Shown here in pieces: positions 25,047 to 29,556 of a stretch of DNA of 35,650 bases (positions are counted from its first letter, which is position 1; each line of letters opens with the position of its first letter). A program made the position numbers and the translations under genes. The notes under the pieces were generated by a model. The model was not told the origin of the DNA. It searched no databases and worked only from the letters and a program-made list of their open reading frames with translations. Origin of the DNA: Euprymna scolopes (Eukaryota). The stretch lies in the NCBI GenBank assembly GCA_053919585.1, contig CM132805.1. One strand, 5' to 3'.

Positions 25047-25300
25047 AGTGCTCAATCATAAAATAGAGCTATTTATATATAATAAAAGTTTTATTTAAAC
25101 AAGCATATCATGGCTACATATCCTAAACATGTTTCAATTGTAATTTTTTTATAAGTTTGATTTCCTCAGGTGACAAAAATAAATGTCAGTTCTATATGTT
25201 TTTATATTGATGAATGAACATTTTATATTGAAAAGTAAAACATGTTCTGGATGCGTGATCATATGTTTATAAAAAATAAAAGTATATATATATATATAGG
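25047..25300. mobile_element. Decayed palindromic hammerhead module with terminal motif
   Basis: Minus strand: CTGAGGA (25169-25163), GAAAC-ATGTT (from 25135), AATAAA, then GCTC-N9-ATTGAGCACT (25069-25047). Degenerate mirror arm on the plus strand. Confidence 0.55.
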
Positions 25301-26554
25301 CTGTATAGTAAAACTCAAGTGCACAATGGATATATAAATTGATATTATTTTCAGCAAAACTAAAAATCTCATATCAAGCAAATCAATTTTTATTTCAAAA
25401 TAACTTCTTCATTATGGCTATACAGTTAAAGATGGAGAGCTGTAAAGGTTTATTTTAGCATGTGTATCGTTAAATATGGTTGTCTTTTCGTAAAATGTGC
25501 CAAAAGCTTTTAAAAAAATTTTTTTTTTATTTTGTATTTGTATTTATGAAGATTCATCAACTCTGTAAGATTCAAACTTTGTAAAAAAAAACCCCCAATA
25601 AAACAACAAAAAAAAAACATTACCAATGTCTTCATTGTACAGCAGCCAGGGGTTAACTCTAGACATGTTTAAATCAAGGAGATTTGATAGATTTTTTTTT
25701 TTTTTTCTTTTTTTTAACATACTTAGAACTTACATCCTCCCCATCATGGATTTAACAGAGTTTTCATTTGAGCAGTTGTTGCTTATTTTATAACATTAAA
25801 AAAAAGTGATATTTCAAATTTTTTATCCTGCTTCTTTTGGACTCATTGTTTTCATCATCTTTCGGCTTGGCCTTTGAGTCAAGATCACAGTGTAGTATCT
25901 GATGCTACACTTCATCTTTTCTGTCCTCTGTCAGTAGAGGAGAAATCCTTCATGATTGAGATAATTTTTATTTTTTTTCCTATCCAGAGTGCTCCTTTTT
26001 CTCAGGAACTGGATTTTCCCCCCCAAATTAAAAACCGACCTTGTGTCTAACTCTGCCCTCGTGGGGAGGCAAGTAAATAGGAATATGCAGGTAGTACTAA
26101 AACGTAATTGCTTTTGCATAAAGTTGCTAAATGTTTATATAATAAATATTTATAAAGCTCTAACTAGTATTGAGCACGTTTGAAAAAAAATATTAGTTTT
26201 GAGTTCATTTTATTAATATATTTGAACAATATATATATATATATATAAAATTTCATTTTAGGATTTTAATTTTTTTTTTTTTTTAATGAAGAGTTTTTAT
26301 TAAATATTGATTTAGGTGAATTTTCTAGAAATTCTCTTTTTGTCATAATGGCGTTTTTTTTTTTTTGTTTTTTTTTCAAGAAACAAATTTACTGCTGAAA
26401 CCTTTTGGAGAATAGTCTGACTTAATTGAAATCAAGAAAACTGCTTTAATATGAGGAAAACAATTGTATGAAAAAAAGAAAAGAAAAATCAATATAAAAT
26501 GTTTTAAACAAGTAACTCAGAATTTTATTATTTCATTATTACATATATATATAT

Positions 26555-26845
26555 TAGTAAGGGGACAATTTTAATATTTTTAATGATTTTGATACAATCA
26601 CCAATTCTCTACTAAATTCCTGATTGATACAATTACTGATTCCGATTCTTTTAAAATTTTTAAATATAGAGTTGTATTATAGAGGAAGGGGTTGGATTAC
26701 CGTAAAATGTAATGTAATATATGCATATATTTTTTTCACAGATAAAAAAAATCGTTTTTGGCATTAAAAAAATGAGCAAACATTTTTTGATTCTGATATC
26801 CCAAAAAGCTTTTCCAACTCTTGATTCTGATTAATCGTCCCAAAA
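26555..26845. mobile_element. Second copy of the 21848-22249 family
   Basis: Shared ATACAATTAC.GATTCC, GATTCCGATTCTTT, AATCG.TTTTGGCAT and ATTAATCGTCCC. Confidence 0.55.
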
Positions 26846-26850
26846 ATAAT

Positions 26851-26890
<40 letters not shown>

Positions 26891-26893
<3 letters not shown>

Positions 26894-27081
26894 TAAATGA
26901 CTAAAGTCTATTCCAAATTTCAAGATGTTAACCATCTTACCTTTTATTTTTTTATTAAGTATGTTGAATTGCACAATTCTTAAAGTACTTACAGAAATAA
27001 TGGGTAAGATGGTCAACATTTTGAAATTTGGACTATAGACTTTTGCCATTTATTTATATATGCTCTGTAGTTACATTGAGC
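26891..27081. mobile_element. Palindrome with ~50-bp arms followed by the GCTC-N9-ATTGAGC motif
   Basis: AAATAAATGACTAAAGTCTA..CCATCTTACC and GGTAAGATGG..TAGACTTTTGCCATTTATTT; motif at 27062-27081. Confidence 0.6.
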
Positions 27082-27085
27082 TTCA

Positions 27086-27180
27086 TAGTGGAGCAGGTTA
27101 TCTCAATATTCCATAAGAATTTCTTTCACTTAGTGATACAAGCAGCTAGTGAAAGATTGTTTCAGCAATCTGCCCCACTA
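27086..27180. mobile_element. ~95-bp mini-MITE, second copy
   Basis: Aligns end to end with 12686-12779. Confidence 0.8.
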
Positions 27181-27444
27181 TCATACCTTAAAGAATTGGT
27201 ATAAATAAAAGGCGAAATATAATTAAACATATTTTCCCATATATATGTGTTTATTTATTTTTTTTTTTGCATACTTTAGGATTTTACTTAACCCATTACC
27301 AGCCAGTGTCCCCATCAAAAATATCTATATTTACATTTGAATGTTTCCCTTAATTCAGCCACTAATGAGTTAAGTAAAAAAATAGCAACACTGTTCCATT
27401 CATTTTCAACAGTAAAATAATCCTATTATCCAAATTTGAATTAG

Positions 27445-27475
<31 letters not shown>

Positions 27476-28594
27476 AAACACCGAGAGGAAATCAACGGCA
27501 GAAGCAAATAATGGAATGATTTTTTTTTGTTTTTCAACATCACTATAAAAAAAAGAAAAAAAAAAAATGGATTCATTACTATTGCTAGTATACAAGTACC
27601 ATCTGATTTAATTTAGGATGACAAAGTCCATGCAGGGGAATGGGTGGAATGCGTAAGCAGGTCTTTCTTGCTGACCTAAGAAAGTTAAATAGTGATAACA
27701 CACTCTAAACTGGCCTTGTAAATAAAACTCACATATGAGGTGGGGAGGAGGGAGCTGGGGGTTATTAGAAATAGGAGGATGCAAGTCATTCTTTGGAATG
27801 TTTATCATTTTTTGTCTTTCGACAAAAGGCTACTGATTTCAATTGGTTATCATTTTTGGTTCAATAATTTAGTAAAAATCTGGGCGTAAATGCTGTAACA
27901 CTTGGTACCAGCACAAACACAGCCGACAGAAATGTATAGGCACAACGCGCATACGCATCTTGACAAGAATGCATACAAACGAATCAGATTAGTTTGTATA
28001 TAAGCACAATCATAGAATTTTTTTTTTTTTTTATGCAAACGACAGCAAAATAGATTTTGGTTAATCATTTTCGACCTTAAGAAAAAATAAACCACATAAA
28101 AAAAAGCAAACACTGAAAAGTTCCCAGAGAATAGTGTTATATATAAAAAAAAAATTTATACATAATTTTAAATTCAAGGCAAAGTCTTAAAAAATAGATT
28201 TATAAAATTAATTTTTATTTCATGTATTTTTTTTTTTTATGTTTTTAAATTATTTTTTTAAATTAATCTTTTTTGTCTTTATTTTAATTATTCTTGAAAT
28301 AATTAAAAGGAAACCGAGAAAAATAGATTAACAGAGTTATCGTCCTTGTTTTTTTTGTTTCAAGGGGTGGGGGAGAACATAATTTCATGAAACTTCTTTA
28401 TCATTTTGTAAGAGTCAATTTGAACAACCACCCTTATCTCAGTCGGTTAATGGCAGCCAAATATAAACTAATCTTTATTCTCAGAAAAATTATCATTTAT
28501 CGAATTTGGAAAGAAAAATATATTAAGCATCATGTTTGATGAGAAATAGATAAATATTATATATATAATTCTGTATTTTTAGAGAAATAAAAAC

Positions 28595-28851
28595 AGTGCT
28601 CAATTACATTTGCAAGAGGAGCATAATATATTTATTATATATCATATTATACAGTGATATTTTGATTAGTCATTGATATCTGTAGTTTCAGGAAGTATAG
28701 GAAATACTATCTATTTGGCTAAAAAAATATATCTTCATCAGAATGTAGAATATATGCAAGATGTAACAAATATTTAAAAAGAAATTGATTTTAAATATTT
28801 TTTATCATTTAAAAAAATTATTTTAAAGCTCTATCTTAAGGGATATTGAGC
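28595..28851. mobile_element. Old module bounded by outward-facing GCTC..ATTGAGC motifs, with a decayed minus-strand hammerhead core
   Basis: Motifs at 28595-28622 (-) and 28828-28851 (+). Minus strand CTGATGA 28741-28735, GAAAC 28689-28685, then AATAAA. Confidence 0.45.
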
Positions 28852-28921
28852 CTTTTGTGTGTGTAAAATTTGTTGTCTTGAATTGGATATGTTCTGACTC
28901 CGAAAAGTTAATTTTTTTTTT

Positions 28922-28955
<34 letters not shown>

Positions 28956-29040
28956 GTGGAGATGGTAATTAATAAAAACTGAAGAAAGTGCTCAATACTG
29001 TTGTAGAGCAAATATGCGTTTTATTTTTTATTACCGTATC

Positions 29041-29119
29041 TTTCTGTTAAGTTACATTATTGTTTCGGCTTCACGGCCGTTTTTTTGGCCGTCTGTAGCG
29101 TCCTCAGACTTTTACAAAA
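29041..29119 (-). ncRNA. Type I hammerhead ribozyme (left arm)
   Basis: AAGU-CUGAGGA-C-GCUACAGACGGCC..GGCCGUGAAGC-C-GAAAC-AAUAAU-GUA^ACUU; one extra mismatch in helix II relative to the right arm. Confidence 0.75.
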
Positions 29120-29151
29120 ATTTTCGCTATTTCATCCCAAAATAGCAAACA

Positions 29152-29231
29152 TTTCTGTAAAAGTCTGAGGACGCTACAAACGGCCAAAAAAACGGCCGTG
29201 TAGCCGAAACAATAATGTAACTTAACAGAAA
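29152..29231 (+). ncRNA. Type I hammerhead ribozyme (right arm)
   Basis: Helix I AAGU/ACUU extended by UUUCUGU/ACAGAAA; CUGAGGA 29165-29171; helix II GCUACA/UGUAGC plus CGGCC/GGCCG; GAAAC 29206-29210; helix III ACA/UGU; GUA site, cut after 29219. Confidence 0.8.
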
Positions 29232-29319
29232 GATACGGTAATAAAAAATAAAACGTATATATATATATGTACACACACACACACACAGTGCTTTAGGGCA
29301 TGTTGAAAAGAATTAATAA

Positions 29320-29556
29320 AGTGCTCAATTGCAAAAATGTGAGAGCTAAAATACAAATTATTTATTTAAAAACTATATGCTACATATTTCAGAGATGTAC
29401 CATGGTTTCATTGACATGGATTGACGTTTTATCATTGAAAAGTATATAAAGATGCTGGAATAAATTCAAATTATTAGTAACTCACACAATGAAAACAAAC
29501 ATGCCAATGAAACCATGATATGTTTCTGAATATGTAACAGTTTTTAAATAATTTGT
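29320..29556. mobile_element. Decayed palindromic hammerhead-type module with terminal motif
   Basis: Inverted arms CATGGTTTCATTG and CAATGAAACCATG. Minus strand GAAAC-CATG-GTA (palindromic ACCATGGT), AATAAA, then GCTC-N13-ATTGAGCACT (29346-29320). Confidence 0.6.

Follow-up and report, generated by a model that had tools for sequence, protein, structure and literature searches.

A repeated GCTC…ATTGAGCACT hairpin in the genome of the cephalopod Euprymna scolopes is, in the interpretation that we favor, the conserved end-piece, or "tail", of one clade of Penelope-like elements (PLEs), the Hydra clade, and of the short protein-less elements that use their machinery, and it probably marks where the telomerase-like enzyme of these elements starts copying the RNA. 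The hairpin came to attention in an earlier note on a 35,650-nucleotide stretch of contig CM132805.1 (the window), and its observation of a recurrent hairpin is confirmed by our analysis. The structure has a fixed GCUC/GAGC lower stem, a 2-nt 3' bulge, a covarying upper stem and a single-stranded ACU. It is not special to this cephalopod genome, as in unrelated public contigs the same motif lies 33-59 nt downstream of minimal hammerheads, and these contigs include complete ~2.8-kb Hydra-clade PLEs from jellyfish-like and bivalve sources. We found no published description of the motif.

Hairpin copies in the window

To ask whether the motif is present more often than expected, we searched the window with the pattern GCTC-N(6-22)-ATTGAGC and obtained seven exact matches, at 25050-25069(-), 26157-26175(+), 27062-27081(+), 28598-28622(-), 28828-28851(+), 28990-29009(-) and 29323-29346(-), whereas shuffled sequences gave a mean of 0.09 and a largest count of 2. 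These agree with the coordinates in the earlier note, and five copies add a trailing ACT. A MAFFT alignment of the hairpins misplaced the 5' arm when loops were long, and we therefore built a covariance model from six hairpins of equal length. The model found only these seven copies in the window (E 4e-7 to 0.05), and the decayed copy at 19525-19567 scored E 1.2. As the note had claimed, the loops all differ while GCTC/GAGC and ATT are invariant. The bodies of the adjacent modules share no similarity apart from microsatellites. An additional ATTGAGC at 18937-18943(-) was rejected as a copy, because it is part of a long stem that overlaps a hammerhead on the other strand and the model does not find it.

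The note had further proposed that in most cases the motif follows a hammerhead, AATAAA and an AT-rich or (TA)n stretch, and this claim held only in part. The order [GAAAC-N4-5-(G/A)UA], AT-rich sequence and motif holds for the copies at 28990, 28598, 29323 and 19528, is doubtful at 25050, and is absent at 26157, 27062 and 28828. AATAAA is not a conserved part, since most autonomous relatives lack it and have a short UAUA-like stretch instead. In addition, not every hammerhead family in the window carries the motif: family A, at 2968-3156 and 16074-16384, does not. Hammerhead cores were identified by direct reading. Rfam hammerhead models do not score this minimal type; no Rfam hit overlaps any hairpin copy, and the palindromes gave spurious microRNA hits.

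Copy c1 (25047-25069, minus strand; GCTCT-N-ATTGAGC followed by ACT; E 7e-7) was one of the seed sequences of the model. Upstream of it lies a low-copy module (25070-25284, minus strand; depth about five times single copy) with a decayed hammerhead core (CTGAGGA...GAAAC), bounded by (TA)n at 25285-25300; there is no microsatellite after the c1 tail. Copy c2 (26157-26178, plus strand; E 0.003) has a trailing ACG and a 51-nt tail (26179-26229, plus strand) that runs into (TA)n at 26230-26247. Copy c3 (27062-27081, plus strand; a seed sequence) lacks ACT and is preceded by a palindromic module at 26893-27055, with arms of about 82 nt that are 79% complementary, no hammerhead core, and (CA)n on its left. 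This module belongs to a family of about 2000 copies, and family homology runs through c3 to about 27250. No hammerhead core is present for c2, c3 or c5.

Copy c4 (28595-28622, minus strand; E 0.05) is a GCTCC variant with ACT, and its 27-nt tail (28568-28594, minus strand) joins (TA)5 at 28558-28567; a hammerhead-like core (CTGATGA...GAAAC-tacag-ATA) lies 54 nt upstream at 28677-28741 (minus strand). Copy c5 (28828-28851, plus strand; E 0.01) lacks ACT, and a (TG)n run follows 4 nt later. The c5 and c6 elements share, tail to tail, a (TG)n(TA)n microsatellite at 28920-28955. Copy c6 (28987-29009, minus strand; a seed sequence) has a 31-nt tail (28956-28986, minus strand), a long-form end, and other genomic copies cover 28965-29065. 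Next to c6 is a near-perfect palindrome (29017-29255; 121-nt arms, 95%) that consists of two head-to-head 3' ends, each with a hammerhead. Its left arm continues into hairpin and tail (the long form), whereas its right arm stops 7 nt short of the hairpin position and joins (TA)n(CA)n at 29256-29287 (the short form). Copy c7 (29320-29346, minus strand; E 0.001) has a 32-nt tail (29288-29319, minus strand) and a weak palindromic module (29347-29560, minus strand; 69% over 226 nt) with GAAAC-catg-GTA at 29398-29409, 51 nt upstream of c7, and (C)n(CA)n at its far end. The decayed copy (19445-19567, plus strand) retains the same architecture, with a hammerhead 3' half (ccGAAACacgtGTA at 19445-19458) followed by ACTC-TGAAG...CTTCA-TT-GAGC at 19528-19559, and carries G>A in the first stem pair.

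These elements have several properties of PLE-type insertions. Minimal type I hammerheads were read in both arms at 29017-29255 and at 28677-28741, and as 3' halves at 29398-29409 and 19445-19458. Copies c2, c4, c6 and c7, the right arm of the c6 palindrome and the left end of c3 all abut (TA)n, (TG)n or (CA)n. The palindromes at 26893-27055, 29017-29255 and 29347-29560 each have the hairpin and tail on one side only, as is typical of head-to-head pairs of 5'-truncated PLE copies. The window has no ORF with a telomerase-like RT and a GIY-YIG endonuclease, its only RT being a LINE fragment, and we conclude that the window elements are non-autonomous or truncated. Read mapping gave copy numbers and family limits but, at low depth, no transcript ends at the motifs.

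Hairpins in autonomous Penelope-like elements

We next took advantage of DNA from other sources. Among 128 pattern matches in metagenome and viral contigs, nine have a hammerhead core within 220 nt upstream, against a background of 0.97% (p 5e-6), and all nine are in AT-rich, eukaryote-like contigs; viral contigs gave only random matches. One related locus (L124/L127/L128; related loci are numbered with the prefix L) is a full element, with a pLTR, a 701-aa ORF, a second pLTR and then (TA)n, in a unit of 2765 nt. Read against the published list, the L124 ORF has the Hydra-clade marks RWK, DKT and CxCX5C and lacks CCHH, and 23 homologues keep C561-N-C563...C569. Pfam and PDB searches with this ORF, the latter by sequence and by profile, were blank, and only a fold search identified the RT: the AlphaFold2 model (pLDDT 86.9) best matches the telomerase RT (TERT). 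The C-terminal GIY-YIG is seen by Pfam only weakly, in 2 of the 23 homologues. On these features, together with the hammerhead, the (TA)n target and a length under 3 kb, we place L124, L130, L131 and L134-L138 in the Hydra clade. Elements that were fetched by protein similarity alone (L130, L131, L134, L135, L136/L137 and L138, plus L129 from Solemya) carry the same hairpin.

In L124, L134, L135, L136/137 and L138, two hairpins lie in tandem between the hammerhead and the ATG. Hairpin 2 was seen only in autonomous copies from other organisms, never in the window. Insertions end in (TA)n at two fixed places, either 2-10 nt before hairpin 1 (the short form) or 27-36 nt after it, just before hairpin 2 (the long form, with the tail). 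The 27-36 nt distance, from ACU to the microsatellite, was obtained from 12 insertions of 10 distinct hairpin families, and the spacing from ACU to hairpin 2 is 32-38 nt. One family shows both forms (L124 versus L127).

The hairpin also shows evidence of a conserved structure. Of the cells in the alignment, 96.3% are paired, against 84.8% in shuffles (0/500), and the two upper-stem pairs each show five pair types, although these pair counts were made on an alignment that had been fitted to the model. Stacking averages 2.93, against 1.26 in matched random hits (p 1e-5), and the fold has the same shape in 15 examples. Sense and antisense strands fold equally well, and folding energy therefore does not tell which strand, or which molecule, acts.

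Comparison with known tails and alternative readings

The closest described system is the tail of the Poseidon PLE of Anolis (PAc), in which the tail lies between two internal RT start sites in a stem-loop about 85-92 nt past the hammerhead cut (Frangieh et al. 2024, PMC11167929); PLE tails are optional and found at one inverted pLTR (PMC3846280, PMC8557442). The hairpin described here likewise belongs to an optional extension at one end of insertions, bracketed by two adjacent ends, with a stem-loop at that place, roughly 85-95 nt downstream of the hammerhead cut, and an AT-rich target. However, the clade is different, the tail is about 55-65 nt rather than 30-40 nt, the region lies in the leader rather than inside the ORF, and the hairpin has a sequence conserved across phyla (GCUC...AUUGAGCACU), not merely an AC-rich one, and is present twice in tandem. 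In the Anolis element the RT start site was not homologous to the target and no conserved hairpin sequence was reported, so the analogy is positional, and that the two fixed ends seen here are RT start sites is inferred from that work.

The Hydra clade of Craig et al. (2021, PMC8557442) comprises elements under 3 kb with a single ORF of about 700 aa carrying RWK, DKT and CxCX5C and lacking CCHH, with canonical hammerheads, insertion into (TA)n, and aquatic invertebrate hosts that include Cnidaria and Mollusca; the text of that paper, supplements aside, does not mention a conserved tail hairpin, and the window holds only protein-less or truncated derivatives. Animal non-LTR retrozymes (Cervera and de la Pena 2020, PMC7229834; Li et al. 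2026 preprint) are also short non-coding elements with type I hammerheads that are thought to be moved by PLEs, but they are described as tandem units that give circular RNAs, whereas the copies here are dispersed head-to-head pairs or truncated ends, and term searches of the first of these papers turned up no shared terminal hairpin. In the 3' stem-loops of stringent LINE/SINE partners and in the R2 3' UTR, a structured RNA element near the template's 3' end is recognized by the element's own RT and borrowed by non-autonomous partners. Those lie at the very 3' end, and copying starts at or after them; here copying appears to start 5' of the hairpin, inside the RNA, and the enzyme is telomerase-like.

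We therefore propose, with reasonable though not complete confidence, that the window holds a nest of Hydra-clade-dependent insertions in (TA)n/(CA)n microsatellites, although no autonomous Hydra-clade PLE was seen in the window or shown for this genome and the partnership is accordingly inferred from elements of other organisms. In this view, each GCUC-stem-GAGCACU hairpin in the element's RNA is bound by the telomerase-like RT, and cDNA synthesis starts a few nucleotides 5' of it on a nicked (TA)n target. Master copies carry two hairpins about 60 nt apart; a start before hairpin 1 would give the short end, with no hairpin in the DNA copy, whereas a start before hairpin 2 would give the long end, with hairpin 1 plus about 31 nt in the DNA copy. 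Our data show the motif, its covarying structure, its place in autonomous PLEs and the two fixed ends, whereas binding by the protein and control of the start site are inferences. Exceptions in the window are c3 and c5, which lack ACU, c1, with no microsatellite after its tail, and c2, with its longer tail. The earlier note's interpretation, of a conserved cis signal (RT template/priming or endonuclease site) shared by diverse ribozyme-bearing mobile elements and possibly a PLE terminus, is supported: the motif is shared by many unrelated families, in the window and in contigs from other animals, it sits in complete Hydra-clade PLEs, and insertion ends fall at two fixed places on either side of it, as expected of a tail bounded by two RT start sites.

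Of the two functions named in that interpretation, covariation favors, without settling the matter, a folded single strand over recognition of the motif as double-stranded DNA by the PLE GIY-YIG endonuclease, a reading that we consider unlikely but that is not exclusive of the RNA role. In that reading, new copies land next to old tails, which builds nests and tandems. Work on the Drosophila Penelope endonuclease, as cited in PMC11167929, found that the tail was needed for recognition and cleavage, and the clustering of seven copies in 4.3 kb, the tails that face each other across shared microsatellites, and the invariant lower stem, ATT and ACT, which could be read as a sequence-specific site, are all compatible with it. 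However, the upper stem keeps its pairing through changes on both sides, which duplex recognition does not need, all junctions lie in microsatellites rather than inside or at the motif, and short-form ends carry no motif yet are inserted in the same way.

We rejected the remaining readings as very unlikely. A transcript 3'-end signal (AATAAA, then a hairpin carrying a CA cleavage site, then a U-rich downstream element) is suggested by the presence of AATAAA 14-27 nt upstream in 5 of 7 window copies and by U-rich sequence after GAGCA, but autonomous relatives mostly lack AATAAA there, the motif lies upstream of the ORF, inside the 5' leader, and occurs twice, and no read ends or poly(A) loose ends were reported at the motifs, albeit at low depth. 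Less likely still is the end of a DNA transposon (MITE terminal inverted repeat or Helitron 3' hairpin) or the 3' stem-loop of a LINE/SINE pair. Copies c4 and c5 face outward 205 nt apart, like inverted repeats, and hairpins near 3' ends are typical of Helitrons and of stringent LINE/SINE partners; yet the c4 and c5 ends share only the motif, there is no target duplication or CTRR end, the hairpin being followed by ACU plus about 31 nt, the LINE fragment in the window (10610-12514) has no motif nearby, and the motif lies in PLEs that have a telomerase-like RT.

A broader and more tentative possibility, which we consider somewhat less likely than not, is that the hairpin is the specific RNA handle of Hydra-clade RTs and fixes the internal start of cDNA synthesis a few nucleotides 5' of itself, and that its tandem duplication is what creates the two start sites and hence the long-puzzling PLE tail. 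In that case any RNA carrying the hairpin, hammerhead-bearing or not, could be mobilized, which would explain the many unrelated short families in cephalopod and other invertebrate genomes. PLEs are the least understood class of retrotransposon, and only one has been reconstituted in vitro. While the PLE tail and the Hydra clade were already described, a short hairpin that is conserved from cnidarians to cephalopods, and that sits exactly at the two alternative insertion ends, gives a concrete, mutable candidate for the RNA element that a telomerase-like RT recognizes to start copying inside its template. It also provides a practical marker, as the motif and its fixed distance to the junction allow Hydra-clade-dependent short elements to be annotated and their ends defined in repeat-rich invertebrate genomes, where they are now mostly unclassified.

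The hairpin copies and their setting in the window

We asked first whether the pattern GCTC-N(6-22)-ATTGAGC was more frequent in the window than chance would allow. It occurs seven times, all between 25050 and 29346, whereas dinucleotide-preserving shuffles gave a mean of 0.09 and a largest count of 2. The observation made in the earlier note therefore held, with the coordinates and strands that it gave. Five of the copies continue with ACT, and the others continue with ACG, TTC and CTT. A covariance model built from six hairpins, three of them from the window, found only these seven copies in the 35.6-kb window; the four that were not in the seed scored E 0.001 to 0.05, and a decayed copy at 19525-19567 scored E 1.2. 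Pairwise BLAST of the oriented flanks revealed no similarity between the adjacent modules apart from microsatellites, although it did reveal three palindromic modules, upstream of the copies at 27062, 28990 and 29323.

Direct reading of this molluscan sequence showed a repeated architecture: a microsatellite; a module, often a head-to-head palindrome whose arms end in GAAAC-N4-5-(G/A)UA plus about 45-55 nt; a few TA-rich bases; the hairpin; about 27-32 nt; and a second microsatellite. The clearest case is the palindrome at 29017-29255, the left arm of which runs on into the hairpin and a 31-nt extension before (TA)n, whereas the right arm stops 7 nt short of where the hairpin would begin and joins (TA)n directly. 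Neighboring elements face each other tail-to-tail across shared microsatellites (28920-28955 and 29256-29287).

To estimate copy number and family limits, we took advantage of contigs from a DNA sequencing run, placed on the region, for which single-copy depth was about 15-20. The family at 26893-27250 has roughly 2000 copies, and its homology runs through the hairpin. Judging by joints at 27087 to 27189-27195, most other copies of this family skip about 103 nt (27088-27190), which represents either an extra insertion in this copy or a deletion in the majority. Other genomic copies at about 92% identity cover 28965-29065, that is, the tail, the hairpin and the start of the arm, while the modules of c1 (the first hairpin copy along the window) and of c4/c5 (the fourth and fifth) are low-copy. 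The hairpin is therefore part of the elements and not of the target. A very abundant SINE-like repeat at about 25859-26083, at a depth of about 250,000, ends 75 nt before c2 (the second hairpin copy) and is unrelated to it; its 5' part resembles U2 snRNA (Rfam U2, 22 bits, below threshold), and other copies end at 26077-26085 in A-rich tails.

An inverted-hammerhead family at 2968-3156 and 16074-16384 lacks the GCTC...GAGCACT hairpin, so that not every hammerhead family in the window has the motif; this family presumably depends on another clade of Penelope-like elements (PLEs) or keeps only short ends. A decayed LINE at 10610-12514 (+), with an AP-endonuclease fragment and an RVT_1 fragment, has no tail hairpin near it. 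A 5S rRNA-like sequence at 20236-20353 (-), flanked by (TA)n, scores above the Rfam gathering score (42.9 against 38) and may be a pseudogene or a 5S-derived SINE. Two inverted copies (87%) of a repeat of about 450 nt, at 6386-6861 and 29639-30109, hold a 187-aa ORF with no Pfam match.

Related elements in other DNA

We next scanned public metagenome contigs for AATAAA-N-GCTCT-N-ATTGAGCACT. Most hits were chance matches in bacterial DNA, but a distinct AT-rich subset was different: in these contigs (loci L035, L050, L057, L078/L091, L124 and L126) the motif lies 33-59 nt downstream of a canonical minimal hammerhead, twice in L124 and, in L050, on both arms of a palindrome. Of 128 pattern hits, nine have a hammerhead core within 220 nt upstream, against a background rate of 0.97% per window (p 5e-6).

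L124 is a complete element, consisting of a terminal repeat with hammerhead and hairpin, a 701-aa ORF (457-2562), the same repeat again 2765 nt later, and then (TA)n. The ORF shows YRDD and a C-terminal IIY...YIG block, and it has the diagnostic marks listed for the Hydra clade of PLEs, namely RWK, DKT, a CxCX5C linker and no CCHH. Sequence-profile searches did not recognize it, whereas an AlphaFold2 model (pLDDT 86.9) had telomerase reverse transcriptase (RT) as its best solved-structure match, followed by other RTs. The protein has more than 2800 relatives of about 700 aa, of which the few that carry a name come from a jellyfish and a bivalve. Hydra-clade PLE proteins are invisible to the Pfam RVT and GIY-YIG models and to PDB sequence profiles although the predicted fold is clearly telomerase-like, and annotation pipelines will miss them. 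Hammerhead or (TA)n palindromes (29085-29187 in the window, 83-212 in L050 and 2034-2186 in the PLE locus L130) score well below threshold against several Rfam microRNA families (mir-9261, MIR4387, MIR4208), which hints that some of those families were built from such repeats.

We also examined loci that were found only through protein identity. L129, L130, L131, L134, L135, L136/L137 and L138 carry the same hairpin, and in these unbiased copies the T after GCTC and the ACT after GAGC are kept, while the A before TTGAGC is kept in most. A further locus, L132, has a diverged form, GACTC-N-GTCGAGCACT. In every tandem autonomous copy there are two hairpins between the hammerhead and the start codon: hairpin 1, GCUCU-N-AUUGAGCACU, and hairpin 2, GCUCC-N-(G)U(A/C/U)GAGCACU, which lies 57-69 nt further on, start to start.

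Insertion ends and hairpin structure

Insertions end at two fixed places. Long-form ends join a microsatellite 27-36 nt after ACU, which holds in 12 insertions from 10 distinct hairpin families, drawn from the window and from the loci retrieved by the pattern and protein searches. The spacing from the ACU of hairpin 1 to hairpin 2 is 32-38 nt, so the long end lies 0-6 nt before hairpin 2. Short-form ends lie 2-10 nt before hairpin 1; examples are the second copy in locus L127, the 3' copy in L130, L133, L134, the inverted copy in L131, and the right arm at 29255 in the window. One family shows both ends at different insertion sites (L124 versus L127), and several insertions have one arm of each kind. 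In the window, c5 is followed by (TG)n only 4 nt after GAGC (28852-28866), which may be a third kind of end, directly after the hairpin, although this is a single case.

Fifteen examples fold to the same shape: a 4-bp lower stem GCUC/GAGC, a 2-nt bulge on the 3' side, a U-A pair, 2-4 further pairs of variable sequence, a variable loop, and ACU left single-stranded. Single-sequence z-scores are modest, as expected for short hairpins. On 24 distinct copies, 96.3% of cells pair, against 84.8% in shuffles (0 of 500 reach the observed value); the two variable pairs each show five pair types, and sliding the partners abolishes pairing. Because that alignment was fitted to the model, we additionally applied a test that needs no alignment, in which the number of stacked pairs counted inward from the fixed stem averaged 2.93 in 15 eukaryote-like copies and 1.26 in 125 chance matches to the same pattern (p 1e-5). 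Sense and antisense strands fold equally well, so G-U pairs do not decide the acting strand.

Relation to the PLE tail

PLE insertions are known to consist of pseudo-LTRs, often with an adjacent inverted 5'-truncated copy, and to carry an optional short "tail" at one end (PMC8557442, PMC3846280). Hydra-clade elements insert into (TA)n. For an Anolis PLE, reverse transcription in vitro starts at two adjacent internal sites in a stem-loop about 85-92 nt past the hammerhead cut; the tail is the stretch between the two sites, and genomic ends fall on them (PMC11167929). The tail and internal initiation are already known, whereas we found no description of this motif or of tandem hairpins in the papers that we read or in Rfam.

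The anatomy found here fits that scheme point for point in position, although it is inferred from the Anolis element that the two fixed ends are RT start sites, and it adds that the stem-loop is conserved in sequence and structure across phyla in the Hydra clade, and that it is duplicated, with one alternative end just 5' of each copy. We therefore read the hairpin as the element that positions the start of cDNA synthesis. The motif, its paired structure, its place in autonomous PLEs and the two fixed ends are what our analysis shows directly; the control of the start site, and binding by the RT, we infer. A role as a DNA site for the endonuclease is not excluded and may coexist with the positioning role. 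It is also inference that the short UA-rich stretch just 5' of hairpin 1 could pair with the nicked (TA)n end. The proposal in the earlier note, that the motif is a conserved cis signal for RT priming or endonuclease recognition shared by diverse ribozyme-bearing mobile elements, is supported by these results. The cluster of seven copies is a nest of repeated insertions into microsatellites.
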